Shown piece by piece: positions 6,201 to 64,000 of a DNA stretch of 64,000 nucleotides (within the stretch, counting starts at the first letter, position 1; the number at the start of each line of letters is the position of its first letter). A program made the position numbers and the translations under genes. The notes below the pieces were generated by a model that was given only the letters and a program-made list of their open reading frames with translations, was not told where the DNA came from and did not search any database. This stretch comes from Pavona decussata (Eukaryota). The stretch lies in the NCBI GenBank assembly GCA_977016875.1, contig CDRNST010000104.1:4340001-4404000 (forward strand), given 5' to 3'.

Positions 6201-9200
6201 GGCACCTTCTGTTGTCATTTTCGGAAAGAGAAATAGCATTCTCTTTATTTGTCCCTGGTTAGATGAGTGAATGGAATACGGTTTACTTGAAATAAGCCTT
6301 CGTTTTGAAAATTATTCATTTGTCTAAGTTGAGGAACAATTGGGTTTTCACTGTATTCGTTATTCGTAAACCGATGTATCAGTAGCCAAAAGAATGATCC
6401 CAAGGAATCCACGCTGTACAAAGCTCATCGTTCGTCAGGGAATGAGCGTACGTTCTCTTACACAGATTACTTCAAAGATTACTTCACCTCCTTAGTGAGC
6501 GCTCTGTTTAATGCCACTGCTTGCTCTGCTTTCACTATCTTTTTGTGACGGACATCTTCAATGTCCAGTTTCTCTTTTGGATCCATTCCAAGTCGTTCTC
6601 GCAGCTCCTCGTTCTCCATTTCAGTGTCATTTACTTTGATCTCCAAATTGTTAACATGGCTGGTGAGGTCTTCAATATTCCTGAAGTAAACGAAACAAAC
6701 AAATAAATGCATCAGCTACATGTAGAATAATCTAAAAACGCTGCTAAAATGAAGCTTGTCATCCTGAGAAGATAATCTTGTGTGCATCTCATCTTAAGAA
6801 ACACATGTTTCTCAGCTTGTGATGTGTCTTCCTCCAGGAGGCAGGCATGTTGCTATAACTTTGAAAACTATATTTCAAGATCTCATATTTTAACAGTAGC
6901 GCAAAATTTCTGGTAAAAAATTCACCATAGTCACGCTCTCAAAATGAAGATTTCTAATCATCACTTTCGCAACATCTACAACTACTGTACCCTAAGTTTC
7001 ATCTTAGGAAATGGGAGTGTACAGAAGTGAACAAAGCAATAAAAGTAACCACATCTGCAGAACAATTAAAATAAGCGTATGACAATTTCTTACTGATCTC
7101 TGATCCTAATCTGAGCCTTGCAGTCCTTAATTTCTTGCACTGCTTCACTCAAACCATATTCTCCCTGAAACAACAAAGACGTGTATCAGAGCATTGTAAG
7201 TAAGGTTATCACGCATACTGGCTCTTAAGTTTCTGTATATTGGTACCGCATGAATCAGGTCATGCATTTGAACTTCACTACTCTTAAAAACCATTATTTA
7301 GACCGCCTATTTTTTTTTTTTTTTTTTTTTTCATTTTTAGGATTGTACAAACTACCTTNNNNNNNNNNNNNNNNNNNNNNNNNNNNNNNNNNNNNNNNNN
7401 NNNNNNNNNNNNNNNNNNNNNNNNNNNNNNNNNNNNNNNNNNNNNNNNNNNNNNNNNNNNNNNNNNNNNNNNNNNNNNNNNNNNNNNNNNNNNNNNNNNN
7501 NNNNNNNNNNNNNNNNNNNNNNNNNNNNNNNNNNNNNNNNNNNNNNNNNNNNNNNNNNNNNNNNNNNNNNNNNNNNNNNNNNNNNNNNNNNNNNNNNNNN
7601 NNNNNNNNNNNNNNNNNNNNNNNNNNNNNNNNNNNNNNNNNNNNNNNNNNNNNNNNNNNNAGGAATGTAGCTTGCAGTGAGAAAGAAGCTCCACTTTTGC
7701 TGGTACCAAAGAAACGGCGCCAACCTCTAGCTGGTCCTTGACAACATCATAACCAGGGACATGGCCCTTGCACCAACAATTATTATCAACAGCTTAAGGG
7801 TTTGGTTTTATTCTTACCCGTTCATATTGCATCATTCGAGCCAACAAATCATTCAACTGTTTGTCCTTATCAGCTGCTGCCTTTTCTGCCTGTTGCAAGA
7901 AAGAACAACTCTTAGTTAGCTTCAGCAAAACAAGGAAAACACTGCTATATTTGCATTAAAAATCTCTCCAGGTTATCTGTAAATAAGACCATCAACTCTT
8001 ACTTGTGAGTCAACTTTGAATAGTATAATGATGTTCTTACATGTGACGATCTTGCATTACGGTAACCCTTAAAATGAAATCTATTAAACAGTGCTCTCCT
8101 CCAGACGTATTTGTTATGTTTCACTAGGTGGTTTCAGCTATTGAGTCTGCTGATGAAGAACTCCTCAGCGAAAGCAAATGAAAGCCATTGACTTATTCAT
8201 TTCGGTTGAGCTGTTATTGAAGTGATCATGGAGTTCTTTGCTACTCTTAGAAAGTGAAAAGTTTATCCTTGCCATTATCATTCTGTCTTTGAACTGGAGA
8301 ACCTCAAGTTGCTCTCTTTGTAACGTACTGTTCAGCTCTTTGATTCTCTTCTGCTGGTATGCCGATGGAACACCTAAAACCAAACCATGTTACTCAATCA
8401 TTTTCAAAGTTTGGACAAAGCACAGCTCAATTTACAACAACTTAAAGCATTAATATTCCTTTTCCTCGGATGAGAGGCTGATTAATCAATCATCATCATC
8501 ATCATCATCATCATCGCCAGCAAGAAGCTTCTCCAAACAACTTGTTACGATACTAACACTTTACCAACATTTGCTTCCCGTTCAAAATCCTGTCATGGGC
8601 CATCCTCTTTTATACAATGGGCAGAAAACAGCTGTAAGACCCACGTTTTGATAGTTCTGACATTTGTGATCAACGTATAGGGCCAGGTTGTTCGAAAGCC
8701 GTTTACACTAAACCACGATGAAAAGTTAACCAAGGTTTTCATCTCACTCGTCAAAAATGCTTTTAAAGACAAATTTTAAGCCAATGGTAGAAAAGTCTAA
8801 GTCCAAAGAGAGGGTCAAAAATCTTTTTGAAGAATCTTTATTGATTAGAAAGGAAACTTGAATTGAAGTTCACGTTAACCTAGTTTTAGCTTAATCCCGC
8901 TTTGAACAAGTAGGCCCAGATGTATGAATGATGTTGTGAGCCGCAGACACATTCCTCCTTCTTGACATTTTGCGCAGATAAAAGTGACAGATTGTTAGCC
9001 AACCATAAGCCTTGTTAGCTTGCGTCAGCCCAGAGTAGTGCCTTCTTGTTATAGATAACAAATGATTTGCCCTCTTAAATCTCACCACAAATTGTTACTG
9101 TAATGGTTTTGAAAACACTTCTAATTTTGTACGGAATAACTGATATCAAACAATGTAAAAAAAAAGAGATTCCATTTGGCCGTCAGTGTGTACTTTGATA

Positions 9201-11113: not shown

Positions 11114-14100
11114 CTTGTGTTAAGATCTGCTTTCCCCACATTGTCATAAACCACACAAAAATACTTCCTTATTAAAAGGCACCATCCTTAAACGATGTTG
11201 ATCAACTGAACGATCTCAACCAGCTGAACCTGCTGAACAACCTAAAACAACTACGCGTACAGAGCCACCTTTAATACCAGAACCAGCTGAACGTACTGAA
11301 ATAAAGGAACGAATTGGTCAAACTCAACTAGCAGAGCCTGTTGACCCAACTGAACAGATGCTGAACAAACTAAACAACCTAGACTTACTGAGCCCATTAA
11401 ACCCAACTAAGCCTACTGAACTAACCCAAGAAGCTAAAACAAGCTAAAACTACTTAACCAAATCAACCAGCTTAACTTTAACCTTAGCCCAATAGAACCC
11501 AGCTGAATCTTCTGAACCTACTGAACCACATGAAGCAGCTAAACAAGCTGAGCCAGCTGGGCCTACTGAATCGACTAAACATAACGAATCAACAGAACCA
11601 GCTGAACCTACTCAACCACAAGAAACTTATGAATCAACTGACCCAGGTTTATCGGCTGAATAAACTGACCCCACTGAATCTACTGAACCTGAAACAGCTG
11701 ATGTTACTGAAAGCTAACTCTCTAAACCACTTGAACCACAACAACCTGATAAACCACTAACCCAGCTGAAACTAATGCACCAGCTGAGCCTATGAATAGT
11801 AATTTAATTATTTATTTACTTATATAGAGCCCTTTAACATTAGAATGATTGCTTTACAATCCAAGAAAACTAATATTAACAATAGATATTACAATAAAAA
11901 TGCTATTTGCAATAGATAATTACAATAACAGTACTAAAATAAGTAATAATAATAAATAAATAAATAAATAATGAATAAATTGATGAATGAATAAAAAGTA
12001 AATAAATAAAATACAAAACACCGATAAGATCGTAATGTGAAACTAAAACGCTAGCTTAAAAAGATAAGTCTTCAGAGATTTCTTAAATAGCGCTAGTGAA
12101 TCAATCGTGCGGATGTGCGCAGGCAAGCTGTGCCACAGCACAGGCGCAGAGGTATGAAACGAGCGGGCACCCAAAGTCGTGCGCATAACCCCTTTTGGAC
12201 ATTCTAAAAATATTGTATCATTATTGCTTAATGAATACCTAGACGATGATCTAATACAGATCAGGTTACTTAAATGAACCAACTAAGCCTACTTTAATAA
12301 CCAAATCAAACAGCCCCAACTGTTCAATTAGCTGACCAAGATGACCCAACTAATCCATCTGAACCAACTTAACCCTAGGAAACATGATGGAACGCATCGT
12401 ATGTGCTTTGACTTTCGAAAACTCAACCAGTCCACACAGAAAGATGCCATATCACTGCCAAGAATGGATGATGTCTTAGCCTCTGGCTACTGGCAGATAC
12501 AAGTACACTGCATTCTCAATGTATCGTAGACAATTTCAGTGGAGTGTTATACCATTCAGTTTGACCAATGGACCAGCTAGCTTTACTTAATTGATGAATC
12601 TAGCACTTAGTGGACTCACTTGGACCCACTGTCTTGTGTATTTAGATGACATCATCATCTGGACCCCTTCCTTTGAAGACCATATTTACCATCTACGGTT
12701 TGTCTTTGACAGAATAAGAGCTGCAGGTTTGAAACTAAAGCCAACCAGGTATCAGTTCCTGAGAAATGAAGTTACTTTTCTGAGACATGCAGTTTCCCCC
12801 AAAAGGAATAAAGGCAGATACGGTGAAAGTTAAATTTTGCCAGTGCCACTGAATATGAAGAACTTCAAGGCTTCCATGGCCTCGCTAGTTATTATAGGCA
12901 ATTCATCTCTGGATTTCAATTATTGCCGAACCTCTTTATTAGTTGTGCAGGAAAAATATACCATTTTCCTGGCAACAGGGAGCAAATATCTAGCTTTGAG
13001 GAGCTCAAGCTTCACCTGGTTAGTGCGCCAGTACTAGCATATCCAGATTTCAACCCTGATGCTGGATCTTTCTTACAAGACACTGATGCCAGCCAACACC
13101 TAGGAATTGGAGCAGTTCTCTCACAGTTGCAGTCAGATGGGATGGAACAGGTGATTGTGTATGGTAGTCACTCTTTGAATGAACATGAGAAGAACTATTG
13201 CACAAATCGGTTGGAGATGCTTGCTTTGGTGACCTATGTCGACCATTTCCATTACTAGTCACTGAGCTGGAAATTCTTTCTACGAACTGACCATCATTCC
13301 TTGAGTTGGTTGATGTCCTTTAAAGAAGTACAAGGGCAGGTGGCACATTGGCTGGAATGCCTTCAAGAACATCACTATGAAAAAAAAGCGACACGGAAAG
13401 CTACATGGCAATGCAATCCTTCTCTTAGCGGCCAAGGAGACCCCATGGAGAATGCTCATGTGTGCCTTCCGCAAAACCAAAGTTGTCAGCAGTCACTCGC
13501 AAGTCTCCATCTGGGGAAAGCCAATGAGAAGGAGAGCTGTGGTCACCTGCGAAGGCAGCATGAGCTTAAGGTGATGATCCAGATATTGGCCCAGTAGTAA
13601 AGCAGTTGCTGTGGTAGTGGAAGAAACCAACTACTTAGGAACTTCAGTCATTGAGTTGTGCTACTAGGGGAGTCTGGGCACAGTTTGAACTGCTCAAACT
13701 GCTACAAGGAGTACTCTATCGGCGGCCAGGCGAAGAAACCTTGAAAGCAAGGAGAATGGTGGTTCTACTCAAGAAACTCATCAAAGAAGGGCTCACTGCA
13801 GTTCCAATGGCCCAGCAAGTGCCCACTTAGGAAGAGTGAAGACCTTAAAGAAGATGAAAGCCAGGTTTTTGAGACCAGGCATGCAATGGTTGTCTGGTGT
13901 GTGCTAAGTGCAAGTCTACACCTAACCCAAGAGCACCCCTGCAGCAAATAACATCTGGGAGCCATATGCAAAGAATTCATATTGACATAGTTGGTCCCTT
14001 AACAGTTGTTCAGTGTAGTTTTACAAAGTGGGTTGAGGCATTTGCAACTCCCAGCCAACGCACTACAACTTGTGCCTGACAGCATACACAGTGATCACAA

Positions 14101-44527: not shown

Positions 44528-45604
44528 TTTACTTTCAAAAACACCTTATATTACGGACATTGTTATTTAGATATCTTCATCTTTAAAATGAACATCAACT
44601 GCCACGAATTCGTTAAAAGAACCCTAGAAACTCTACTAAAAATGATTAAAAATAAGAGCAATAGCTATTTCCTGGAAAGGACCGACGAAAGGCCAAGTTG
44701 AGGAAAAACTTATAAAAAGTAAGGTAACAAGGTGTTATCATTTGTAGGAAACTTAATTGAAAATATTTTTACGATCACAAGTGTTTCCGCGGAAACGTAC
44801 AGCTGCTCATACCGAATTCATGACAGGAGAATTTATACATTAATCACACATTAAGAACAACTAAGTCGAACTACAAGGTATTATCTCTGGAGAGCTGCGT
44901 AACGAAGGAAATGAATCAACTAGTCTTTTTCTGTGATATTCCCCAAACCGAAATTTAATTTGTAATAAGTCCCAACACCAAATAAAATTCCTTTAACTAT
45001 TTTAACCTCAAATAATTGCGTTGTAAATATTTTTCATCATTGACAATTTTATCATCTAATATTACTGAGCTTGGGATGCCTGTTGATGGCATCCAAAAGA
45101 CGGGCCATTCAAACTAACTATCATTTCAGTCTGTGGATGAAATCTTCGTGTGAACTTTGATCTCATTTCCTAAGATTTCTGCCCCACTGTTTGACGTAGA
45201 CTTTCGTTACCTTGAAGTTAAAATTACCGTTAAAAAACATGCGCAATGAAAATCTCAGGTAACTGTTAATCGCGGATATACTGATGGATGAGCATTAATC
45301 AAATAAATGAGCATTTCACAGTCTAACACTTTGTAACATGACCTTCGACACACCGCCTCACATGAAAAGAAAACCATGTTGTCCTGAGCGGACAACATGG
45401 CTTCTAAATCCCTAAACGGGATTTAGCATTAATCAGCTTTCTAACAACCGGATACAGCAAATTACGGTGGTGGTGTAAGTTCTTAAGCTTTGTGAGGAAG
45501 TTATGATTACGCTAAAGCTCAGTGTTTGGTAGATGAAATCGGGGACCGACCATTCAAATAAAGTTTGTTAGTACATGCCTGTGGCAATATTCGTTTTAGA
45601 TAGA

Positions 45605-46410: not shown

Positions 46411-46719
46411 TAGAACCTTCCTGTACTGAGTGCAGCTTGTTATTCTTAAGGACTATCAATGAAATGTTTGGGTCATTGGATGAAACCAAAAAGTGTGGCC
46501 ATTCAAAGGAAATCTGTTGACCAGTACTTTCCTTTACCCTACTTTACACTTTTCTGAACCAGCGCATCAAGATTGATTTGTTCCAAGCCGTAGTGGCTCG
46601 CTTTGCGGTACAAATCGTTTTAGGTTTAGGTGAGTAGATCGACGGAAAAGGTTTTGTAAATGAGAAGGAGATCTCATCCGATTAACAAACACTCATTTCC
46701 TCTGTATTATGTTTATGTT

Positions 46720-47430
46720 AATACAAGTTGAGTTTTATAAATACACGCCGTCATCGGAATTAGAACTATGTCATGCAACTGAAAATGGAAAGGGCAAAGT
46801 GGAAAGTGCAATCTGTTTCCGTGATTACTACTAAATTTCTGTTGAAAAGCGCCAAAATCAGGCAAAGAGAAGGGTATATTGTACACAAATTTCGTAACAG
46901 ATATGTTCTATCCTAATGAACGGCTCAGACACCCGTCTTATAAACTTCTGCCCAACGAAAAAGAAGGAGATGAAAGATAAAAAACCACTAATTAGATATA
47001 GTTATCGCTCACAAGCAGATAGACTCCGAACGACTTAAAAGTTAAATTCTAAATATTATGTGTTTTGAAATCGGGAGAGATTTTCAAGGACATTACTGTA
47101 AATTGGTATGAAGTTTTTTGATCTACTTCTTGACTGGAGTTAACATAACGTGCTGAGCCTCGTAATCAAAGGCACGCTCTTAATTTATTTTTCGCCAACG
47201 AGGAGACAAAAGAATTACCGCATTTCCCTAAGTATGCTTCCATCACAGTGACTGGATATCGTCAAAAATGGAGATTACGAGGAAGCCTGCCAGCATATAA
47301 CACACCTCTAACTTTAAATAAATACGTGCAGTTCCTTAAAAAAGGTGCTTTGTATTATGGTGGACCCGCATGCTTCAGAGAACTGAAACTAAATAAGGAT
47401 GTACTTCCTTTTCGTTGAAAGGTAAGTACC
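46720..47430 (+). repeat. Diverged duplicate of the 56230-56960 module
   Basis: Collinear shared words: tataaata..cggaatta(g/c)aactatg; tgatt(a/g)ctact; agatgaaagat; gattttcaaggac; aaattggtatg; tgaaaggtaagtacc. Confidence 0.8.
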
Positions 47431-47441
47431 TTTACATGTTA

Positions 47442-47723
47442 AGGGCGATTTACACGGTAAGACTTTGTCACATGCGACAAGCTTACGACAGGCCTACGAC
47501 ACGAATTGTTTCGTGTAAATCAAACCTACAACTCGCTTATGACTGTCATGTACGTCACAAAAACAATGTCGTAGTTTTAAAATCCTACGACAATCGTAGG
47601 TATAGGCAATGTTGAATGACGGGAGTTGCGTGCGATTTCTTGCATGACGCGAGCAGCGCCCGCTCTAGAAATCGCATGCGACAGTGCAGTCGTAAGCAAA
47701 AGTTGTACCGTCTACATCGGCCT
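47442..47723. mobile_element. PIF/Harbinger-like MITE, TTA TSD
   Basis: TTA|AGGGCGATTTACACGGTA ... TACCGTCTACATCGGCCT|TTA. Confidence 0.8.
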
Positions 47724-48879
47724 TTAGAGAGTGATGGGCAAATGGTATCGGTACATTCTAACTGCTATATCGTCTATTTTCTGCGGTTTGGAGAAACCCT
47801 GTCAAAATTTTAATTTGTCATCATAGAATTCATTAACTCACCGATGTAACGAAACAAAATTGACGCTATAGTATAATTTCGTTTTCTGTGGAGCAGCTAG
47901 GCTAGCCAGTAACCGTACACCGGGCCTGAGTCTATGCAGTTATTGTTTTGTCCATAAACAATTTGGGCATCGAGATAACGTATACCCACTTTTCGTTCAG
48001 TTTCTCAGTTTTAATTGAATTCAGAAATACAAATCGCCTCGCTCTATGGCAACCGAGCACCAACTATAACGACTGTGTGTTGTATTTAGTATTAACAACA
48101 ACCAGGAAACGTCGTGATCCAAAACAAACGAGGAAAATAATTTGCCTTAGGCCAGTTTCTAAAGAATTTTTTGCAGCTTGTCTGCTATTTTAAGCATCCA
48201 AACAACGTGTAAAGGATAATTCCCCTTGAAAGGCTTTGTTTTAACTGCGCAGCCACTCTCAGCGAGTAAACCGCTCTGTTCTCCCAGCTTTGGAGTCTTA
48301 TCCAAAGACAATGGAGGTTTGGGACTTTCACGACCTTTTGATAGGAACAGACAATATTATTGAGGGCATTTGAAGAGTTTCACTGCAATAGAGATTGAAG
48401 CAGAATAACATATATTTCGAGGAAGATTGTTATCAAAAAAAGCAACAACGTGAAGAAAAAAAAATCAAACGGATCGTTCAACTGATATCCGGCAGCAGAT
48501 AAAAGTGTCACTATTGCTGTTGAAGTTGATGAGGAAACTCGCTGAACCGCACTCAATGCAAATCCAATGGTTGACAATAGTAGCAGGTGAACCAAGGTCA
48601 AGTGACAGAGAAAGCTGTCGCTACAATAATTAAAAGACGTGAACGGCTTCTATTGAAGTAGCAGACGAAGCAACTGAAGGGCCGGTTGGTGCAGGAACTG
48701 ATGAAATTAACTGAAAGCTCTGACGACAGTGAATAGACACAGGTCTGATTTAGGACTGAGTTCACTTTTAGAACAAACAAACCCTAAACAATGCAGAAAC
48801 AAGGGTTGAAATTCACTTAGGTTTATTTCAAACTTTGAATACCCATCGAAGCACTAATGAGTCATTACTCACTTAGATG

Positions 48880-49920
48880 TTGATTTTCGTGAACCTTTTG
48901 CGTGTTTTGACTGACTTCTGCCAAGTCATTGATTTATATCTTCTTGCTAATTGGTAAGTTTCAAGACAGTCACGACTTTTTTTATGTACACATGTTTCGG
49001 ATGGAAACTTCAGTACAAGTAACAGAACCCACTAGTAGGTGTGATATAAATGAAAGCAGGATAGAGTATAACTAATTACAACATGACAAGAAAGTAACAA
49101 ATATGGCTAATTACGTGACGATAATAAGGAAACGGAAAAGAAAATATATACTGAATAAACAAACAAAACTAAATAGCCAGTGAAAGATTAACGTGAGAAA
49201 TTTGCCTATTGGGTGGGGGGTTTTCCCCATTGAAAACGCAGCGCCTCCTTGATTTTGAGGTGGAAAGGGTCTCCAAGATGGAAAACAGAACAATCTTCAG
49301 AACATAAAGCTCGCCGTCAGTTTTCCGAGCTTTTAAGATGATATAAAATGTGGGAATTCATGTCAGTGGAAAGGTGCTCCCGGATTCGTGTAGCACACCA
49401 CAGCCTGCGCAAGCGGAAACTTATAAACTACACGAGATTGTAGTGACTTGGATATACTATTTTTCACACTAAACAACTTCCTTAATTGGTAGGGGGAAAA
49501 TCCAACTTCATGTCAAAATTTTTGCAAAGCCGCTGGGTAAAACACCTGATTTTACGTTGAACAGTGTTCGAAAAAGGGCCAAGAAAAGGTACTATATATA
49601 AAATCAGGCGTCTTACTCAGCGTTTATAGTATACTGAGTCACGCCGTAATTAGCTATATACTTTTTTTACTTTTCTTTTTGCGTTGTAATTTAATAGTCA
49701 TATGCTCTACATTTATTGTCAAGTTGTAATTAGCTATATTCTTGCATTATATCACACCCACTAGCGGGTTCTGTTACTTGTACTGAAGATGGATGAGTTT
49801 CGTCCGAAACGTATATAAATTTAAAAAAGTCGTGACCTTCTTGAAGATTATTTCTTGTCTGCTGGTTCTACGGAAAATTGGTAATTGCTGTTGGCAACTA
49901 CTATCCAGATTCAACTATCC
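48880..49920 (-). mobile_element. Penelope-like element of a second family: decayed GIY-YIG flanked by inverted pLTRs
   Basis: Minus 49170-49445 gives frameshifted LQSRVVYKF..CAGC..TRIREHLSTD.NSHI..HL..LKIKEAL..HVNLSL; 48961-49130 is the reverse complement of ~49640-49845. Confidence 0.8.
49778..49818 (+). ncRNA. Minimal type I hammerhead ribozyme in a Penelope-like pLTR
   Basis: ttgta-CTGAAGA-t-GGATGA(gtt)TCGTCC-GAAAC-GTA-tataa: conserved core, 6-bp stem II, palindromic ACGT stem III, 5-bp stem I. Confidence 0.7.
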
Positions 49921-50619
49921 ACTGCGCCTCTTCATAAGCCTAGGAAAAGCCAGTGCAAAAGGTAGTTGAATTGTAACTTTTAAGGAGCTTAATCAAGGAT
50001 CTCAAAGCAATTCCATTAAAAGAATAGGAATAGTAAATTATGGAGCGTCTCAGGAGTTGTAGGCACAAGGCATGACATTTCCGTGTCCTTCAACAACCCG
50101 TACAAGACTTGAGAGACAGGGGTGGACTCAGACAGACACCTTTATTTAGTTATAAAGCTCAGGGTAGTCCCTTCAGGAGCTGAAGTTAACAGCGCATTCA
50201 TCGTCATGTGTTGCTGTTTGAGGCCTTGCGCGTTATCCAAGCAAACAACATAACGCGGGAGCATAACCGATATTGCTGGCTCTGGTTACAGCGCCGTGAT
50301 CTCAAGACGGCTCTGGTCAGTTAGTATTCTCTTGGCTGGCCGAGCACTATTTTTGTCGAGCGGAACACTAACTGTTTTCAGCAACCATAGTTGATAGATT
50401 GTTTATATTTTCTTCCATATCCTCTCTGTCCTCTCACTGTGAAGGATCTCTTGAGCACAATGCAATCAAGGAATCCCACCCCAAATGTCCTTGAGTGCGC
50501 ATGTGAATCTTTGGTTCAGCCATAAAATCAAACATAAAGAAGTCCACGGTGGGCCGGATTCTTGAAACCATACTTGGTTAAGATGTGTCCTCAGCCAGAT
50601 TATCTGAATTCAGAAGTTT

Positions 50620-51300
50620 ATTGTTTAGAAACAACACTAAAGGTTCATTTGAACTTCAGATGGCTTGATGTTACCCCCAAAGATATGTTACTTAATTAGA
50701 GTACGCATTACGGAAACTCGTCTCCATCTTATTCCTGTCATACAGTTGCATTCTTTGTACCATTCTCAGGAAAAACATAATCTTATAATGAATTCGATCT
50801 ATCATAGCTTATGACTGGAACTCGAGCTTCTTTACAATTCCGCTGAATATCCCGTTACAACTGTTGGTCAACGATAACAACGTTACACGACGTTCCCACG
50901 ACTTCATGTCATCATTGTTAAATTAATGTGAGAAAATTAACATAAGTGGTATCATATACGTGCACAGAAATGGAGTGAGAAAAGTTACCTGTAAATTACA
51001 TTCAAGCATGGGGATTTACAATCAAACAAGTGTTCAGCGTCGGTCTTTTCTTTTTAGTGACGAGCATTTCAAAAATTACACACTCAAGCTTACCTCGACA
51101 TTTCCGAAGGATTTCAAAGTTATCATGAAGGCTCAGCCGTCTAACCTTTTAAACTGTTTATCAGAATCGATCCCTAATTATTGGAACTATTGGTGTACTT
51201 ATCACTACTATCTGTTTTTGGAGTTTTTTATTCACTGATGCCAATCTTTGAAGTCATTAACTTGCAGCGTCTTGCTATAGCAATGTGGCGATCTTTGTGG
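50620..51300 (+). pseudogene. Possible highly decayed opsin/GPCR paralogue
   Basis: Short collinear matches to the 63.5 kb opsin: agaaacaacacta; ttacaactgttggtcaac vs ttaccactcttggtcatc; NRSLIIGTIGVLITTICFWSFL/SLMPIF vs NRTFSRKRAICLSVAMWLYALFWSVMPLC. Contains stops and frameshifts. Confidence 0.35.
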
Positions 51301-53194
51301 AACAATTAACCAAGAAAGCGATGTTTTTTATATTTTAAAGAATATTTATCACCTTTCAACGGATAACCCTGCCAGCTTAGAACAGTTATTAATTAAAATA
51401 AATTATTAAAATGTGTAAGTGCACTATGTGGGGGGCACGCCAAATGCTTTCCATCACCAATTTTCCCACCCATTTTTTCTTATGCGAGAATTGGCGACAT
51501 TTTCGTTAATTAAAGAACATTCTAGTTTCATCACAATTGAATTTAAACTCCGTCATTTGGAAATATAAAGAATATCGAGCGCCGTTAGTTGCCGAACGTC
51601 TTTAAATTGGAAATAATAGCTGCAGTTTGAAGCTTTTATTATATTTAGAATAACTCCATCGGCTAATCTTTGATCATTCCTAACAACAATTTGGTTGCTA
51701 TGCGAAACCGAGCAAACTGAAGAATGTTGTTTCGCCAGTCTTTGTATGGGGTATTCACAGTGAAATCACTTGTCGTCTACTGGTTTAAATTGGATTCAAG
51801 GGAAGCTTGAGTGAAACACGTAACAGTGATATACACATGGCAAATGAATTCTTAAGCAAAGCCTGGTAAGCAAATACAGTGTCTGTTTTAATAGCATTGC
51901 CAGTAACAGTGAGATTGTTTGTATGAATTGCAAGTTGGATAGGAGCGAGAGTAGTTAGATTATTTGGGTTTAATTCATTGAATTGTTTTCTTCTGTTAGT
52001 ATCCTCGACCTTACACAGGTAGTGATTTTTGAGTTTATCTCAGTCCAACTCATTATGTAGACACGCAGTAAGACATGAACTGTCAAAAAAACCTTTTGTT
52101 TGAAGAGCATTGAAGAGCATTTGAGTGCAAATCACACTGCAGGAAAACGAGGGCCAATGATGACTCAGTGAAGTCTTACCGAGATATTACAAGTGCTAGC
52201 TGTGAGTGCTAGCTGGCGTTGTCAACTAATTCACGACATGTTTTAATTTCTGCCCGTACCAAAAGCAAATTTGAGCGTTAAATCGTAATGTCTTGATGCT
52301 ATAATGAAGGGTAGAGAATTTAAATTTGTTGCAGATAATGTTTGATGCGCGATCATCTTGGTGAATTCTTATGCAATCGGATATTTCAGAATTGCGTACT
52401 TCCCTGCAAACAACTTCGAAATTCATATGACGGCAATTCTAGTCATCTGGGAGAGGCAAAGGACTCAGATTCATCTACTACTTTTTCAAGGCCTGACACT
52501 TTAAGCGCTATACCTTAACATTTATACTGAGTTGGGAACTGAAAATAGCAGCTAGTGATTTTGAAAACTTTTGCAGGTGTCGATTGGGCAGAAGACAATT
52601 TTTTGGTGGTCCTACGTTTTATAAATTGCGCATGGCTTTTAAAACACGTAAAATATTCGAATCTAATAAACTTTTAGTTACTCAGCCTTGCAGGCTTTAC
52701 AAGGCCTCTAAGTTTACCCAAATGTCTTAATATCTTGGAGGGAAGATAAATTACGTAGCAAATTTCTTAACTGTCGCCTGATAGGGGGCCCGGGCAACGA
52801 ATTCGTGCGTGGTCACTTCAGAATACTGCGAACCACTTGGCAAACACTGTTCACCAACCAAAATGTAAAAAAAATCACTGTTTCCCTTCTGGAAGCACTC
52901 AGATTTACTAGCGTTTGCCAATACTGAAGTGCTTTGTCAAGGTGCATCAATTGGTGCCCGGTGGATGCCGTATTTCAAAAGGTAGAAAGAACTACTGGCC
53001 ACACTGACGAGTTTCTCATCCAGCACATCGTAGAACTGCCCATTCAGTGTTAAGTCTTAGGATCTCCGCTTAGTTAGAATAAAACGGATGACGGTGCTAG
53101 AGCTTTCAACCACCGAAGCACAAACTGGCCAAAAGTAAAGGTACTACAAAAATACAAAATGTTCACAGCCGTTTGAAGGCGATGGCGAATTAAT

Positions 53195-53560
53195 AATAAT
53201 CAATCTTTAACGAGGAAGCCCACATCACAAATTGGTTTTCAGAAAGGTCCTCATTTAAGACCTGAACTAAATCAAGGTAAGACCTACACTAAAATGAAAG
53301 TAACTAGCAGTAGATAAGAATAAATTAAGTAAGGATAGATTAATTACATGCTAAAATTCATGCTAAATATATACTGGAAAAAACTATGGATTAAAAAAAT
53401 GGCTTTGGACAAGCCACGCTTAAATGCAGCTATGGTGGGTGTCTCTCTTAGAGTAATGTCTTGGGTAATCCATAAATCAGCAACGAAGTTTAGAGTAGTC
53501 CAATGTCCCCATCTTCTAGAAGCAAAAGATTAACGGATATTAAGCTTAGATCTAGTATTA
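53195..53560 (-). mobile_element. LINE 3' fragment
   Basis: Minus strand ends ...TPTIAAFKRGLSKAIF, followed by a UTR and (ATT)n tail. Confidence 0.55.
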
Positions 53561-54265
53561 TAATTATGAAAACTGCTATTGAACGAACAGTGAAACGAGA
53601 GCATAAACAGTTTATGAACAGACTTTTAAATAAAAATAGCGGGCTGCCCAGCCCTTCGCCGTTGTAAAGGCCTCCGGTGGAGCATCGCAAGTGCGTCGCT
53701 TGTAGAAGCGCACAGGGGAAGATCTAAAGTGAGTCGCGCAGCCTTATTATGTAGAACTTGTATCGCTTAATTGTAGGAATGATTTAATGCGCCACAGAAG
53801 ACCTAGTTTCGCGTTTCTCTTACGGTAATCAACGTGTTCTTGTAAGATTCTTACTAATAACTAATCCTCAGTATGGAAAAGCCGATTGGGCTTCATCAAG
53901 ATGTTTACCGTTGGTGGAAATAACAAAAAAAGTCGATTTTACTTAGCCTCGCATTACTGATTAACATAAATTGTGACTTCTTGATGTTCAGAGTAAGTTG
54001 ATTCCATCTGGCGTTGCATATGTGTCAGAGGTCCGAGTCCAACTCCGATTCAATTTCTGATATGAGTTTCGAGGAGATTAGCTGAGATTCGTATTTCAGA
54101 ACTGAGTAACGCTTTCCTTCACGCACGCTGAACAATAACTATTCGCTGAACAATATCTTCACATCTGAGAAAACCAAGAACTAAGATAAAATGGTTTTGT
54201 AAGTTTTAAAGTGTGCTGTCTTTCAGGGTTCGTAGAATTCAAATTCCAAATCTATCAAGAGCCGC

Positions 54266-54511
54266 GTGAGGCTGTTGAAAGCCCGATTAAGCTAATCCCG
54301 GGTTAACGCGAACTTTCATTCCAATTTAATTACTAATCAAAGAAGACTCTTCAAAAAGATTTTTGTTCACCTGTTTTGACTTAGACTTAGACTTTTTTTT
54401 ACCACTAGCTTAAAATTAGCTTTAAAACCATTTTTAATGAGCGAGATGAACACCTCGGTTTATTTTTAATCGTGGATTAGCGTTGATCGGCTCTCGAATT
54501 ACCGGGCCCTG
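54266..54511. mobile_element. MITE family A copy
   Basis: Collinear with the 20996 copy. Confidence 0.75.
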
Positions 54512-56245
54512 GGGTGTTGTTTATTGTACTGGATCAAGTGATTCTAACTTTCGAGTCTTGATGAAATTCTGCAGTGTCATCATTCAAATTACAAGGTGTC
54601 AAGTTCGAGACTGCAAAGCATGGTTTAGTGTGTGGGAACAGGTGAGGAGGGGGGTGGATTCAAATCTATCGCGTGGTCTTCGGTCACTTGGGCGATCTCT
54701 TGGCAGTTTCAGCAGAAAATTCCGAGTTCTGAAATGGCTAAGTATGAACTAGAACGGTTAAGCGAGATCTGCGAGATGGAAACGTTCAATACCGAACCAA
54801 AACGTCCCATCAGTGTACGATCAAAGCTACTCAGAGCAGTATACTCCGCCAACAAACTTAGCACATACTACAAAATCAAACTACAACAAGTACGTTTTAA
54901 AATATGCTCATCAAGGTACGGTTTAATTGTACATTTGCGACTGATCATGATATGCGACTGATAAGGAAACGAATTTTACGAAGTAATTATAGTACTGCAG
55001 GCAATCTATCTTCTTTTGTCATAATACCACCAGCACTTTTTGCGAGCAATTGCGTCCGTTCTGGTTAAAAACGGTGAGTGTCAGTGGCCAGATTGCTGAA
55101 GAGCACTTTATTTGTGTTATCGTTATAGCGTTATGGTACTTGTGAGTCTGTGGATGAAATCCTAAAGTGCGACCCTTCCAGTTTCTCTTTGAACATTACT
55201 TCTAAAGAGCTTTCCATTTATTTTTATTGACTTTATTAGGTGCATGGATAAACTGTGATCGCATTCAAATGAAAGCTATTAAGCAGTAGTTTCTTGTGGT
55301 GCTATTTATTCTGCTGTAACCCGGTGGTTCCAACGTTTGAGGGTGAGGGTGAATACGCAAAATGTGACCATTTAAGTATTTTACAACAATGAATGGATTT
55401 GACATTGTAGTAAGACGTTAATTTCATATGTTCCCTTTATGCCACCTAATTACTATACGAAGAGAATACAGCCCAGAAAACAACTTTACATGTTTGGAAA
55501 CCGTTTATAGGATTTTTTTGTTATGCGGTGATTGTATGTGCTTCATTAGAAATCGGCCTTTATGAAGACAGTGTTCTGTTTCTTGTAAAGTACAGTTGAG
55601 AACATGCGGATCTGCATAGTGAATGATCCTGCACACTAACTGGCTGTTACAGTGCCTGTTTTAAAAGAGACATATGTTTTTTCGGTTTATTGTTTCAAAC
55701 TAAATTTACCCTCAAGCCCAGCTAAATACGGCGACCTTATAGCAAGAAATAATTTAAAAACCAGTGAACAATGCCAAATGTATGCCAACTTTGCCGTATC
55801 AATTTGCGGCCAAGGTCTGATCAGTGTTATCAATTTCTCGTAGGGTTCAAGGTCCTGAAGGAAAAGTGTTGTAACGATTACCTGTCAGTGCAATTAGTCA
55901 TGTCTATACAGAGTATAGTGAGCGAGTCACTCGTAGAATATTTCACGGTATACCAATTGAAAGCAATGCATAACTAGTATAAGCAAAAGCGAGAGTGTCC
56001 ATGTTGTATCGGATACAAATTGTGCAGATTACTTTTGAATGTTCGTGCTTATCGACTGATAACTATCCATCGCAGTCTGAGACTTTAAATGAAGTTGAAA
56101 GCTGAAGTTGAAGTCTCCGATACATCTGAAGCATTTTAAGAGAGGTAATAGCAGGAACATTTCCTGTAAATCTCTGTATCCGATTTGCAGATACAATACC
56201 CATGTAACACTCTTAACCCCTATATTCTTTTTATGACTAGAGTGC

Positions 56246-56948
56246 TATAAATAAATGACATAGCCGGAATTACAACTATGCGCCCTGGATTTTGTTTTTT
56301 AAAGTTAAATGCACATAAAGGCTCGCTCTTCTATGATTGCTACTTTAGTGTCTGTCGCCAGGCGACAGCAATGAGTAAAGGCGAGGGTTATTATCGATTT
56401 TAGGAAGATGTATGGTACGACCCCTTCGATTTATCTTCGCCGAACTCACAAACCCTTTTAATAAAATTCTGGGAAAAAAACGAACTAGATGAAAGATGAC
56501 AAAGCTCTAATGAAAGACAATCATCGCCCACAAACCGATAAGGCCTGATTTTGTCCGAGATACAGTTAACAATTGTTAAATGTTTTTTTTTTTCTGTTCC
56601 AGCGAAGAGTGATTTTCAAGGACTGTGCATGCAGCAAATTGGTATGGTAAGTGATTTTGTTTTCTGCCTGTAATTTGTGGTATTCAGACGTACACTCAAG
56701 GCGCCTTCTTGACTTATTTTTAGCTAACAAACCAACATTTTCATATGCTTGTATTACAGAGCTGGAAATCATTAGAGGTGGCCATGCAGCTTTAACAAGG
56801 GCAAGTGGCAGATCTCACTTAGATCTTTTTACGACCCTTGGCAGTAACTGCGTGACTGTTGCAGGAAGTCAAATTTCTTGCTTCATTTGGTTGGGACCTG
56901 CATGCATGCCTGCAGACTAACTAAGAACATATTTCTCTTTGCTGAAAG
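56246..56948 (+). promoter_or_regulatory. Candidate opsin promoter and non-coding 5' exons (TATAAATA 56246; exons ~56603-56646 and ~56760-56948)
   Basis: Poly-T acceptor ...ttccAG at 56602, donor GTAAGT at 56647, branch-like GCTAAC, acceptor tacAG at 56759, donor AAG|GTAAGT at 56949. The block has a diverged paralogue at 46.7-47.4 kb. Confidence 0.45.
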
Positions 56949-58470
56949 GTAAGTACCCTTTGAAAGTGGAAAGTTGACAGTCTTTTCAGAGCGATGAAGA
57001 CTGTTATCGAGCCGGGAAAGCAATATAAATATCAGTTTCTAGAACTACCCGCAACTACCGGGCAATACCAGCGAAAAAGTTAACTACCGTTGCAACCAAC
57101 CATTTCAGGGGACCACAATTGGTATCCACAATAACGCGAACTTGAGTTCTACTAACCTGTCTGTCTTTTAAACTTCAAATTGAACCAGGACTAGAAAACC
57201 TCGACTCCCATCCTAAAACACAACTAGTGGTGCCTGCAAAGTTTAGAGCAAGAGAAAGGCGATTTTGCTAATTCTTCCGTAAACTTTTCATTTCTATTTT
57301 CAACGGAATAACACCGGGGTAAGAAGGGAGATAATTCCTCCATAACAATTATTGGGTGCATTCAAAAAACGCGGAGAACGTGTGAGAGTTTCAAGAGAGT
57401 TGATCACAGGTCAAGGGCTAATCAATGTCCTCTATCTTGCGCATCTTTTGTTCGTGCTTCGAATTCCCTGAAAACAAGCGTTTGCCAAACAGGAGGTACT
57501 CAAAAACACGACGCAATCGATTTAATAAACTCCTCGGAAGAAATGGAAAACAAAGCGCAATTAAGTGTCAAGGGCACTGCTGTGCGATCCGGGTATGACT
57601 TCCTCAATGAGCTGTTGATTCCGATGGCTTGGGCCAGTTGGAACCAGTTCTAGATATGTCCTTTGATATCTTATCTTACATACCTTGTTACGACGCTGTC
57701 ATATGCAATAACATTTGAACAAATGCGAACAAAATGGCAAATACATAGAAGGTGAGAAAAACTCCAGCAGCTCAATAATCGATGGACTAGCATGCTATCC
57801 CGGGTTTCCATCCTATCTTGCATCCCTAGTCTCTTCATTCAAGAACTGAAAAATCAGAGATCAGCGCTCAAGAAGTGATATCTCAGGAGTGTTATGTTAT
57901 CACATCCTGATAATACTCATTAACAACGTTTTCCCTTTTCACCGCTCTGGATAATTAAATACCTCGCTGTTCGGCTACTCGACTGTGAAAGGAGAGAAGA
58001 TGTAGTACTAGGGAACGTTAAACAGTCTTTAACAATTAAGGGGAAATCATTTAAATTTTCACGAGAATCTTTGTAAGCTCAAACTCACTCATGTAAATTT
58101 GTTTCGACTCTCATGCTCACGTACACGATATGCAACCTTTCAGCGCCAAGCCGGTGATCAACATGTAATTTCTCCTTTAAGTGTCACCGCTCATTCAAAC
58201 ACGCATGCCATGATCAGAAATGATCAGCAAAGAAATTCCCCTCACTTCAACTATAAGAAATATGTATATAGAATAGTAAGGAGAGAATGAATCTTCAACA
58301 CTTGCTAGCGGGTTTCAATAGGTATAAAAAGAACTCTTGAATAGTGCAGGGACCACTTATACAAACAGCAGCAAAGTGTAGCCGGATCTTTGTGTAGATC
58401 AGGATCAGCAATGTTGAATAAAACGTAAAATTAAATGCAAGGCTGATCGGACAGCTAAAATAATTTTATT

Positions 58471-58515
58471 GCCCAATATTTCGGTTAGACAATACTACTA
58501 TCCTTCGTCAGGGGC
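58471..58515 (-). ncRNA. Minimal type I hammerhead ribozyme (Penelope-type)
   Basis: Minus strand reads GCCC-CTGACGA-a-GGATAG(tagtattgt)CTAACC-GAAA-TATT-GGGC: intact core, perfect 4-bp stem I, stem II with one mismatch, palindromic AATATT. Confidence 0.7.
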
Positions 58516-59347
58516 TGCAAAAGCTAAGTAAAAATTGCAAATAAAGGGTTGCAATATTTTTAAAAAGATGATACAAATGAAAGTTGAGATGTGATTGGTT
58601 GATAAACAAAGAAAGATGAAACTTGTACAGTCGCCATTATTAAAATAGCAAAAAATAAACCTCTTGCGTACGTTCTCCTCGGGGCATCTCTCGCTTAGCC
58701 AGTTGAGTTAAATGCACGGTCATCGACTCACTTCCACTCTCAAAGAGTTGGAGCTCTCGTGAACTCCTGTCCTCTTGTATTCACTCTCATCAACTCTTAT
58801 GCAAAGAATCAGTCGATCGTTCGACAACTTGTCAACAACGGTTGCCCTTATTTTAGAAAATTTTAATAAAAACCTTATGGTAAATTGCTTTTAGCATCTA
58901 CAAGGAATTATTTTGTTAATAAAAAATGATTGAAAACTCCGCGGGCTTCTTAGTAATGTAAATTTCATGATAACAAAGGTACCAGTGAGAGCTAACCTTC
59001 GTCTACTGTGTTGTCGTGAAACGCAAGTTGACTATTTTCACAACTGATCTTAAACCGTAAGTATGGATCAAATTTTTCTTTGCCTACGGGAGTTGAGAGA
59101 ACAAAATGAAAATGTTAACGTGATCATGAAATATGTGTGATGTTGGAACACTACACACTGTGAATCTTCCATGCTTTATCATAGGGTACGTTAAATCAGG
59201 TGGTAGTATTCATTGATATCTTTTTCAGTTCGGTAGTCTTTATTAGTTAAGGTGCTTTTCATTAGGCCGAAAGAAATTTATGGTCGACTACGTAAAACTT
59301 GACATCTTGTAGATCTCCGGTAAGAACTGGAAAGTGTAATTTATTTA

Positions 59348-59700
59348 CAGTCAATCCAGGTCACGCGTGAACAGTAATTCCAAGAATGAAATGAACATTC
59401 GAATTTCTCTTTGTAATGTCCGACGTGTGAATGGAATGTTGGACATCTCTCTGGAAATCGTTCCGAAAAAGACGCATTAACTGAAAAAAAGATTCAAAAT
59501 ACTTGAGAAACAATTGTTATTCTTGAAATATTCAATTTTGCAATGTAAAGAAAACTTCATAGCTTTATACCGTCAATAAGCTAGGGAAATTTATACCGGG
59601 AACTCTGAAATCTCGTTGGCGATTTTCAAAACTGACATGTAAATTTCAAAACTTCGTTCAAATTTCAAAAATATCGTTCACGCGTGACCTGGGTTGACTG
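59348..59700. mobile_element. TA-flanked MITE, same family as 34893-35256
   Basis: TA|CAGTCAATCCAGGTCACGCGTGA ... TCACGCGTGACCTGGGTTGACTG|TA. Confidence 0.85.
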
Positions 59701-60935
59701 TAAACGTTGAAAACTTTGCCACCTTCCTCTTCATTAAAATATTATAAGTTGGCAAATAATAATGAAATACGGAGTTTGCAAGCCCCGAGGCAGAACGAAG
59801 GCGCTGTTAAAAGTTGCCACACTTGTAAACCACAATTTGAGTCACTCTGAAAGGATTAGCAAAGTTAATGAAACTTTGCCTAGAGCTGACAGCCCTAGAG
59901 GAAGGCTTATACAGACAAATAAAAAGGAACTACAATTAATAAATTTAACTTCAAATCGCTGATAGTACACCGGACACCACAAAATGTAGGTCCAGGAGCG
60001 CATCTTTTTTAGACAAGCAAGTGCTAAATTAACCGTGTTCCGAAGCTTGCATGTCTAAAAATGGCAAAATGAGTGGGAGTGAAGCCAAAAGAGGTGTTTT
60101 GTATGTGAGAGCAAGTGCCATGGAAAAAGAAATACAAAAAAGAAGCTGACTGCAGCAAGGAAATCAGATGGAACTAAACTTTCCTGAATTCAGTTTCTGG
60201 CTTTAGTAACTTAGCGCAAGCCCAGATCGGACTGACCGGCGTTAAATACAGATACACTTAAGGAAAACAGATTTCAAACGCTTTTCATTTTGGACTAGCC
60301 GTTTCCTTATCATGGCGGATAGGTTTCCACTTTGAACAACTACGGACTGTACTTTACAAGTACTTTGGCGCTTGGAAACAAATCCAACTGCAGAACGGGG
60401 AAATTAAACTCAAACGGGCAACTCGCCCACGGGAAAGAGCCGTCACTCTTCAGGTCTAACCGCGAAGTGCGTGGACAACTAGCTGAGACAACTTGACGTT
60501 TGGTTCCGACAGCAGTTTATTCTTTAAACACGTAACAGATATGAGCTTGTGGAGGACTTAACGAAAAACAGTACAAACTGACTAGCTTATATATATATAT
60601 ATGATTCGTACACCTGTTCACTTTAATTAAAGAAGCCACACAAAAGGTGCATATACAAAATTTGTTTGATCTTAGCGAAATTAGAAGCTGTCGTTGGTAT
60701 AAGGCTCTTTTTAAAAGTACAGTATTCTAAATTAAAAATTCCTAAAAAACAATACACTATAATTGATGCAGAGACAGCAAACGGTTCTTGGGGGACGTAC
60801 TGGCGACGAATGAATAGAATTGCAAGCCGGTCAGCGAGTGGCTGTTGAAGCACGTACTAACGCTGTTGAAGGCAGGGAAATTAACCCACATACAATACTA
60901 TTTGGAGAAATGGTAGTTTTAGTAACCATAACAAG

Positions 60936-61600
60936 CAGAGCCCATTTATTCAAAGCCCGGTTAAGCTAATCTTGGGTGAACGTTTGATTGGAGTATATTT
61001 AATCTGTAAGAATTCGTCCAAAAGATTTTTTTGTCGTTTAGTTTTGCCTTAGACTCTTCTTTGCCATTAGTTTAAAATGAGCCTTTAAAATCATTTTTAA
61101 TGAGTGAGATGTTAACCGACACCTAACCCTAAAATTCTTTTTCTCTTAAATAAATCTTTGCACCTGTTCGAAACGCATTGAGCCTTTTTGCGCCTTTTTT
61201 CAACCAAATCTTGACTTTAAAAGTTACGAAATCTAGCCATCATCTGTCCCATGACCGAGCTAGTAAGGGGCATGGGTCTATTCCTTACTTGACGTCACAA
61301 ATGGATTTGCATTGTATTAAGTCTTTGTGAAAATGCATGCAAAGCAGTTTGTGACTTCATGTAAGGAATAGACCCATGCCCCTTACTAGCTCGGTCATGG
61401 GACAGATGATGGCTAGATTTCGTAACTTTAACAGCCTATAAAAAGTCAAGATTTGGTTGAAAAAAGGCGCAAAAAGGCTCAATGCGTTTCGAACAGGTGC
61501 AAAGATTTATTTTAACGAAAAAAAATTTGGGGTTAGGTGCACTTTAACTTTTAATCGTGAATCAGCGTTAATCGGCTTTCAAACAACCCGGCGGGCCCTG
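60936..61600. mobile_element. MITE family A copy carrying a nested ~430-bp palindromic TTAA element (61116-61543)
   Basis: Host halves are collinear with other copies; the insert is almost fully self-complementary. Confidence 0.85.
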
Positions 61601-62651
61601 AACTCAACGCTCCGGAAAGCGCCTCGAGAAAAAGTACTGTTACCTTTCTGTAGAATTATTATTTAGCAAATAGCACGAAATTACGGTTGAATACGGCCAC
61701 ATGTAAATATAGCGAATTATTCCCTTAAAAACTAAATCCGGCTACGGCAAGCAACGATAAAAAGTTAAATCCCCATGTAAAGCTGGATACAAATAAGACG
61801 AACCCTTCAACCTAATTGATCACTTTGACCTTCTCAACCTCAAAAACACATGAACTCGCAAAAAAACACAAATTCTGTACACATTTCCTACCGCTCTTTC
61901 ACTTTATACTGGTCAAACAAAATGAAGATGATTTTTTTCTACAGTACTCGTGTACTGGAACGGGGATGCTCTGGAGCTAACTCGCTAGCGAAGAGGAACC
62001 TTCAGCACTTCGGGATCTTCTACTTACAATGTTGAAGTCGCGATATTGAACTCTCAACTCAACTGTATTTCAAATTAAACTCTCAACTATTACTCCTTTT
62101 ATAAGCTAATTGACAGGAAGCTGCCTAATCAAATTATAGATCGATAATACAAAGTTGAGCAGCTATCACTGTGTGAATTTAACACAGCAGAACCAATGAG
62201 GAATATAACAGATGATAAACAAACAAGAGAAATGAAGTTTGCTAAGTATATGGCTTCATTTAATCCGCTGATCCCTCCCTCTACACTTTAATTCTTCTTA
62301 AACATTATCTCCTTCCTTTGAAACCTAAGCTAGACTGACATTTGGCGTAACACCAAAAATAATCAACAAACTCTTGAGATTGATTAAGGAAACCTGTACT
62401 ACAAAGTTAACAATCAATCATCGTTGACATCAAATTCATGAAATTAGAGTATTTATTTCCAAATATATCCTCCTCCGCAATCTCTTTTAACCCTCAGTAA
62501 GTCCCAATAGTGACCAGAAACTAATTTCTCTCAACAGTATTCTAACTGATGAAGAACACAATTCATGTGAAAAAAGGAATTAGTTACCTAAAGATAAAAT
62601 GTATTAATGATTAAACATTTTCTCCAATCTAGCAACAAGAGTTATCCAGAC

Positions 62652-62908
62652 GTATCTAATCGATGATCAATGACATCAATGAGTAATCGATGGGTAATCA
62701 ATGAGTAATCAACCGATTAGTCATTGATTATTGGCGATGATCAATGGGTAATCGATGACTAATCGATGATCAAAAATTTTGTGGCCTATCGATTACTCAT
62801 CGATGACATCGATTACTTATCGATGTCATTGATTATTCATTGATGCTATTGATTACTCATCGATTACCTATTGATTACTTATTGATTACTCATTGATTAC
62901 CGAATACC
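62652..62908. repeat. Fold-back array of ~11-bp ATCRATGAGTA units
   Basis: Mostly forward units up to ~62770, reverse units after. Confidence 0.8.
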
Positions 62909-63159
62909 ATTTCTTGTGGATCGTCGTTAAGAATATGGGTATGGAGAGTTTTTGTACACCCACCCGGTGGCTTAAGTTCTGTAGACTTTGAGCGAATCAA
63001 TTTTTGAGAATCATTGCATTTAGAAAATGACGGAGAACATGCATGCTAATATTGGCGCTTTAAAAAGGGTTCTAGTCACTTTCCATTTTTTTCTCCGACC
63101 GGCAATGCTTGGATACTGTTACTTGTTGTTATCATTCCACGTGATTCCACGAGCGCACT

Positions 63160-63191
<32 letters not shown>

Positions 63192-63516
63192 ATGTAGCGC
63201 CCAATTAGCTATAATATCCAACAAACGCCTGTGGAATAGCTGAAAGATATATATTGCTAGATCATGGTGATGTCGTTTTGCAAGAAACAACGAAGGCAAT
63301 TTAATGGCCGCTATTTCTCGGGCATGGTGTAATGGCTGACACCCCATGGCCGCTAAGCTAAAGCGATCAAAACTGTTGAATTGCATTATCCAATGATCTT
63401 ATTTTAATAATTGTTAATTATTATAGCGGCAGTTAATGAGCTATGACTGTATATTTTTTACAGGGTTTAATCGCTGAACAGGAGAAAACAACACTAGCAT
63501 AAAGATACAAAAGAGC

Positions 63517-64000
63517 ATGGTTGCCACTATCTATTGTGTTTTAGCTGTCATCACGGCCTTTATCTGTGCAACAAGTGTGCTCTTGAACGGTTTGGTGTGC
63601 GTGGTATTTTACAAAAATAAACAGCTGTTAAACGCTCCAAATATTTTTATCGTTAGCGTGGCGCTCAGTGATCTTTTATACTCAGTAACATCTTTACCAC
63701 TCTTGGTCATCACAAATGCACTTGGAAGGTGGATTTATGGAGACAGCGGCTGTACAACAACAGCGTTTATCGCTACCTGGGGTGGTCTGACTTCTTTGAT
63801 GAATCTCTCTCTTGCCTCGTATGAAAGATATGTTGCGTTGGTTTTCCTTTACAAGAAGAATCGGACTTTTTCGAGAAAGAGAGCGATTTGTTTGTCAGTG
63901 GCCATGTGGTTGTACGCTTTGTTCTGGAGTGTGATGCCATTGTGTGGCTGGTCAGGTTTTGAGCTGGAAGGAATTGGTACGAGTTGTTCAGTGAGATGGA
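63517..64000 (+). CDS. Opsin-like class A GPCR, N-terminal part (TM1 to ECL2), truncated by window edge
   Basis: Open frame MVATIYCVLAVITAFICATSVLLNGLVCVVFYKNKQLLNAPNIFIVSVALSDLLYSVTSLPLLVITNALGRWIYGDSGCTTTAFIATWGGLTSLMNLSLASYERYVALVFLYKKNRTFSRKRAICLSVAMWLYALFWSVMPLCGWSGFELEGIGTSCSVRW. It has the TM1 Asn, ALSD, WxYGxxGC, ERY and the opsin-type ECL2 motif PLxGWxxFxxEGxGTSCS. Acceptor tttttacAG at 63463. The K296 equivalent lies outside the window. Confidence 0.88.
   Translation, partial: MVATIYCVLAVITAFICATSVLLNGLVCVVFYKNKQLLNAPNIFIVSVALSDLLYSVTSLPLLVITNALGRWIYGDSGCTTTAFIATWGGLTSLMNLSLASYERYVALVFLYKKNRTFSRKRAICLSVAMWLYALFWSVMPLCGWSGFELEGIGTSCSVRW

Follow-up and report, generated by a model that had tools for sequence, protein, structure and literature searches.

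Tandem duplication of units that each combine a promoter with a first exon can generate alternative first exons, as in UGT1A, the clustered protocadherins and the duplicated non-coding leader exons of vertebrates. Intronless genes of the retrocopy type can gain a distal promoter and an intron in the 5′ untranslated region (UTR). Here, we describe a duplicated non-coding block upstream of an opsin gene of the coral Pavona decussata, within a stretch of 64,000 nucleotides that we call the window (positions 4340001-4404000 of contig CDRNST010000104.1, hereafter C104, in the 602-Mb, 1180-contig genome assembly GCA_977016875.1). The opsin expansion in Hexacorallia was driven by tandem duplication and retrotransposition, many cnidarian opsins are intronless, a feature attributed to retrotransposition, and the tandem opsin duplicates of Nematostella have near-identical non-coding flanks, with more than 97% identity (PMC10512536). 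The coral case resembles that of Nematostella (PMC10512536) in being a local duplication at an anthozoan opsin locus, in a clustered family with several members whose coding sequence (CDS) is intronless; it differs in that the duplicate is an upstream block of 0.76 kb rather than a gene and in that the copies are old.

The duplication is real, old and local, and it comprises two copies, m1 upstream and m2 downstream, whose limits were set by alignment:

46688-47440, forward strand: m1, the upstream copy of the block; faint extra homology may extend back to 46676.
56206-56967, forward strand: m2, the downstream copy of the block; faint extra homology may extend back to 56169.

The block is non-coding and about 0.76 kb in size, and its copies lie 9.5 kb apart in the same orientation, at 16 kb (m1) and 6.5 kb (m2) from the splice acceptor of the opsin coding exon. 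The original prediction of two collinear, diverged copies at this spacing was borne out: positions 46688-47433 align with 56206-56960 at 60% identity over 811 columns (E 5e-24), and identity across aligned pairs is 70% when the global alignment is gap-permissive. The Smith-Waterman score of m1 against m2 is 71, compared with 12.8±1.4 (maximum 18) for shuffled sequence, and on both strands of 204 kb of surrounding DNA the match of about 103 bits is followed by a next best of about 30 bits. As in arrays of the UGT1A or protocadherin type, same-strand paralogous units, here two, stand before one acceptor and common exons, each with a TATA-like motif and, at its end, a consensus donor. The coral units differ from such arrays in being two, non-coding and 30-40% diverged, in that one has no internal donor, and in that their promoter and exon identity and their usage are predicted from motifs.

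Searching the genome by BLAST with m1 or m2 returned only the query itself. BLAST is too insensitive to find the sister copy, and we therefore built two profiles from sequence only, R1 from the 3′ half of the block and R2 from its 5′ half. Across the 602-Mb genome both profiles recovered just the linked m1 and m2, all other matches having E values of at least 0.17; as such searches score the best candidates only, two is a lower bound on the copy number, and very old copies could escape. A filter-free profile search of the window again found only m1 and m2, and no third copy was present in the regions of the opsin paralogues (204 kb in total). Because the region is rich in miniature inverted-repeat transposable elements (MITEs) and other repeats, the block might itself be an old transposable element or a member of a dispersed repeat family. 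The two-copy count from BLAST and both profiles speaks against such an origin, as do the single-copy DNA immediately flanking m1 and the absence from the block of terminal inverted repeats common to the copies and of open reading frames (ORFs) resembling those of transposable elements, and we regard it as barely credible. The single-copy state of the DNA adjoining m1 also led us to reject its capture by a transposable element. These results agree with the original prediction, which had noted the lack of terminal inverted repeats and of coding remnants of transposable elements, and which would have been at odds with a high-copy interspersed repeat.

Within the block, the following motifs and predicted elements were located (a slash marks an exon boundary):

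46736-46743, forward strand: TATAAATA, a TATA box by motif, some 50 nt inside the left border of m1.
56246-56253, forward strand: TATAAATA, a TATA box by motif, some 50 nt inside the left border of m2.
47105-47114, forward strand: the m1 site that has lost the internal donor GT, GGTATG--AAGT, with a 2-bp gap after 47110.
47416-47430, forward strand: the final-donor 15-mer of m1, TGAAAG/GTAAGTACC, identical in m2; last exon base 47421.
56647-56759, forward strand: the predicted internal intron of m2, 113 nt, ATG/GTAAGT ... TTACAG/AG, with a pyrimidine tract.
56760-56948, forward strand: the predicted second leader exon of m2, 189 nt, ending AAG/GTAAGT with the GT at 56949-56950.

In m1, TATAAATA is followed by a motif, CGGAATTA-AACTATG, that is common to both copies. 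The 15-mer TGAAAG/GTAAGTACC stands at 56943-56957 in m2 and has just four occurrences genome-wide. The shared opening and closing sequences named by the original prediction are both present, and other parts of it need qualification. Its two complete non-coding exons in m2 have complete splice motifs, and as exons they are predictions from those motifs. Its claim that m1 no longer has its internal splice sites holds for the donor, whose GT is gone, and fails for the acceptor, whose AG is still present at 47247-47248; a weaker donor, TTG/GTATGA, also stays at 47106. The stretch homologous to the predicted m2 intron is found in both copies, and the block was therefore copied from DNA and not from spliced RNA. 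A short ORF within predicted exon 1, opening with the ATG at 46970 in m1 and at 56489 in m2 (about 20 codons, no frameshift), was rejected as a coding candidate, the differences between the copies being spread across all three codon positions in a hand count.

Homology between the copies begins some 50 nt upstream of the TATA box and extends to about 20 nt after the final donor. In flanks of 400 bp and 2 kb around m1 and m2, local scores for collinear similarity are at shuffle level. One further element abuts the block:

47439-47728, strand unassigned: a MITE-like high-copy element of about 290 bp, with dozens of genomic copies at 86-91% identity.

This element lies 18 nt beyond the m1 donor and has no counterpart in m2, and its insertion is later than the duplication. 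The original prediction had recognised a MITE just past the upstream donor and had also held that similarity between the copies resumes beyond it; the second point is not sustained, the local score there being 13-15.5, which is shuffle level. A weak collinear pair at 45172 and 54356 was rejected as part of the duplication: it lies outside the block and is part of a dispersed repeat that is present a third time at 60949-61592. That third copy carries a nested palindromic MITE of about 430 bp (61120-61547), for which further copies occur on both strands, at 91-93% and 86-88% identity, and the same repeat is uninterrupted at 54275-54507. Another high-copy element, about 360 bp long, occupies 44700-45060, on the upstream side of m1 and 1.6 kb away from it; more than 35 of its copies were scored, at 90-95% identity.

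The gene downstream of the block is defined by two features:

63462-63463, forward strand: the AG of the 3′ splice site, placed by the boundary of a transcript contig; the coding exon begins at 63464.
63517-64000, forward strand: start of the opsin CDS, which continues past the window to C104:4404575; 352 aa, intron-free.

An in-frame TGA stands at 63475-63477, ahead of the opsin ATG. The encoded protein is a rhodopsin-family protein with seven transmembrane helices (Pfam 7tm_1, E 2e-49), in which both SYERY (the ERY after transmembrane helix 3) and AKSSACYNPILY (the helix 7 lysine before the NPxxY motif) can be read. Its relatives are stony-coral proteins labelled rhodopsin, melanopsin or pinopsin-like, and it is therefore an anthozoan opsin, an assignment that goes no finer and does not separate ASO-I from cnidopsin. 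Two opsins of close relatives, P0001 and P0002, share 99% and 95% identity with it. Two paralogues lie nearby on the minus strand of C104, pA at 4266884-4267897 (78% protein identity to the window opsin) and pB at 4415368-4416414 (65%), so that three opsin paralogues with an intronless CDS fall inside 150 kb. Synonymous divergence (dS) of the window opsin is 0.52 to pA, its nearest paralogue, and 1.27 to pB. At the nucleotide level, the window opsin and pA are homologous precisely from the ATG onwards (85% over 872 nt), whereas none of their flanks are. Such ATG-bounded homology would fit gene conversion limited to the CDS, or a copy of the CDS only.

A cluster of this kind invites the explanation offered by the original prediction, in which the whole promoter-plus-opsin unit was tandemly duplicated and the coding exon and intron of the upstream unit were later lost through deletion and turnover of transposable elements, leaving m1 behind. 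The proximity of the three paralogues is in keeping with it, as is the documented role of tandem duplication in the Hexacorallia expansion (PMC10512536). The divergence of the block is also similar to that of the closest paralogue, its Jukes-Cantor distance being 0.57-0.65 (0.38 in the gap-permissive alignment) against the dS of 0.52; the block and the opsin/pA split would accordingly be of roughly comparable age, a correspondence from which no link between the two can be drawn. Several results nevertheless run counter to a whole-gene origin. Searches of the window upstream of the gene for an opsin remnant (tblastn of the opsin, blastn of the gene) gave chance matches only; the interval 36000-63500 has no coding-like ORFs of at least 75 aa, and two ORFs from it, one of them between m1 and m2, had no Pfam matches. 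Nothing is collinear beyond the block apart from the dispersed repeat described above, the homology of the paralogue begins at the ATG, and the block is absent from both paralogues, with no copy within 20 kb of either. With the interval between m1 and m2 free of opsin relics and the homology confined to the block, tandem duplication of the entire gene lacks support, and we consider it very unlikely.

Evidence from RNA places the exon upstream of the opsin CDS far away. RNA contigs were aligned over 58001-64000. One transcript contig from run X10, record 8, is 1638 nt long with a depth of 48; it aligns with 63462-64000 at 98.5% identity, continues past the end of the window and carries 28 unmatched letters ahead of 63462. 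RNA depth is zero in the unique intron bins, and run X10 thus behaves as RNA. Because the match ends at 63462 and the contig continues with extra letters, the opsin mRNA is spliced at the AG of 63462-63463, and the acceptor named by the original prediction is indeed in use in mRNA; this evidence is good and comes from a single contig. The match includes 63462 and not 63461, which indicates that the upstream exon ends in AG and not in CAG, as would fit the sequence ...GAAAG. No exon joint was found within 58001-63461, so that the 5′-UTR intron measures 5.4 kb or more and the upstream exon lies outside that range.

The architecture of the host gene, an intronless CDS after a UTR intron whose conserved acceptor precedes the ATG by about 50 nt, resembles that of retrocopy-type genes, an analogy that covers the gene itself and leaves the duplication of its leader unexplained. 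All eight genomic loci from coral relatives that we compared have a pyrimidine tract and an AG 49-55 nt before the ATG, and the UTR intron is therefore old in this opsin clade. No homologue of the block was found by blastn or profile in metagenome loci of coral relatives (L018-L025; up to 4.5 kb upstream), a result from which nothing follows, since even next to the ATG the UTR fails to align between these genera. The final 90 nt or so of the UTR intron, some 130 nt before the ATG, are near-identical among L020-L022, L024 and L025, whose CDS are only 72-77% identical to the query; this stretch may be a conserved intronic element. Within the UTR intron, 62486-62632 also shows weak similarity (63% identity across 148 nt, E 2e-6) to L019:355-499, just upstream of the relative's opsin, which could reflect a common repeat or an intron remnant.

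Which donor is joined to this acceptor was approached by scoring candidates upstream. In 30000-58000 only three donors score at least 7 (47422, 54642 and 56949), and extending the interval back to 20000 adds 27492. The exons at 27492 and 54642 would end in CAG and are unfit for the boundary of the X10 contig. Eight donors in 30000-58000 score at least 4 and have the form AG/GT preceded by a base other than C; those of m1 (47421/47422) and m2 (56948/56949) tie for first. The original prediction had allowed for both final donors to join 63464. Both are the strongest that are compatible with the contig boundary, which does not discriminate between them, and the odds that one or the other serves the leader are thereby raised, indirectly.

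It is also conceivable that neither copy is the leader: neutral intergenic or intronic DNA would have been duplicated, its motifs would be coincidental, and the real leader would lie elsewhere, possibly outside the window. TATA-like words are common in AT-rich DNA, six weaker compatible donors lie upstream, the decay of the block looks uniform and neutral, and the exon status assigned to m1 and m2 comes from motifs and not from RNA. On the other hand, a perfect AAG/GTAAGT within 20 nt of a block end is rare, given three donors of such strength in 28 kb, and the scarcity of the final-donor 15-mer in 602 Mb points the same way. The complete, well-formed 113-nt intron of m2 and a contig boundary that fits an exon ending in AAG are likewise hard to reconcile with coincidence. 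We judge this explanation unlikely, though it deserves serious weight.

The opposite possibility is that both copies are live, as two alternative TATA promoters with leader exons that are each spliced to 63464 in a variable-first-exon array. In favour of such an array, m1 retains the TATA box, the downstream motif, the internal acceptor and the final donor, its donor equals that of m2 as the best compatible one, and the block edges match a promoter-to-donor unit with unalignable flanks. The pattern of sequence change points the other way. Identity between m1 and m2 is even: it is 0.73 ahead of the TATA box, at the box and its surroundings and in the predicted intron, 0.72 in predicted exon 2, and 0.68 both in predicted exon 1 and immediately after the final donor, so that predicted exons and intron are conserved alike and no more than expected from neutral decay. 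In simulations of neutral decay at similar divergence, a 15-nt identical run arose in 9-25% of replicates and at least four runs of 10 nt or more in 3-15%. Because neutral simulations reproduce the identical run, nothing shows selection holding the TATA box or the donor of m1. The loss of the internal donor GT and the MITE inserted 18 nt from the final donor also argue against an active m1. Finally, the X10 contig follows a single path for 30 nt past the junction, whereas at similar usage of m1 and m2 a break would be expected after the six letters common to both, an expectation inferred from assembler behaviour. We therefore hold simultaneous use of both copies to be quite unlikely.

We tentatively favour, at somewhat short of an even chance, a partial duplication that took in the leader region, m2 being the leader and m1 a copy in decay. 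A block of about 0.76 kb was copied at the DNA level within the region upstream of the opsin gene, roughly at the time when the window opsin split from its closest paralogue. The opsin consists of an intronless coding exon after a 5′-UTR intron of at least 5.4 kb, an arrangement that puts its leader exon far upstream. The block resembles such a leader region, with a putative TATA box near its left edge, a short predicted internal intron and a consensus donor near its right edge. The downstream copy m2, with all of its splice motifs retained, is the likelier working leader, a role for which we see about an even chance or slightly better. The upstream copy is probably a decaying and inactive partial duplicate, in neutral drift rather than the remnant of a second opsin gene; its drift is suggested by the even identity, an identical run within the neutral range, the lost donor GT and the inserted MITE.

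Several points weigh against a leader in m2 and a decaying m1. Use of the acceptor is documented by one contig with 28 letters beyond the junction, fewer than the 31 required for a bridging record. A leader starting from the m2 TATA box would include many upstream ATGs, and the start and exon use of m2 are themselves motif-based predictions. Donor scores were computed with a generic matrix. In addition, the neat promoter-to-donor borders of the block are compatible with selective retention of both copies and a functional m1, for which they are mildly suggestive. Taken as DNA, this is an ordinary small segmental duplication, to whose copies functions are assigned by prediction.

Other features of the window lie apart from the block. 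An element of about 365 bp in the UTR intron (59341-59705) recurs many times in the genome at 97-98% identity and reaches very high depth among the contigs of the RNA run; it looks recently active, transcribed and non-autonomous. A degraded Ty3/gypsy-type retrotransposon at 12923-14778 comprises fragments of reverse transcriptase-RNaseH (E 3e-21) and of an integrase C-terminal/SH3 domain in separate ORFs. The window also contains a run of 302 undetermined bases (N) at 7359-7660.

If m2 is the leader, the true promoter of this coral opsin would be placed 6.5 kb from the coding exon, which would help the design of reporter constructs and the reading of chromatin accessibility (ATAC) and cap analysis of gene expression (CAGE) data in an eyeless, light-dependent animal. 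Were m1 active, the locus would offer a simple case of regulatory diversification through promoter duplication in a cnidarian photoreceptor gene. With both copies live, a single photoreceptor gene would be under two regulatory programmes, for example larval versus adult or specific to light phase.

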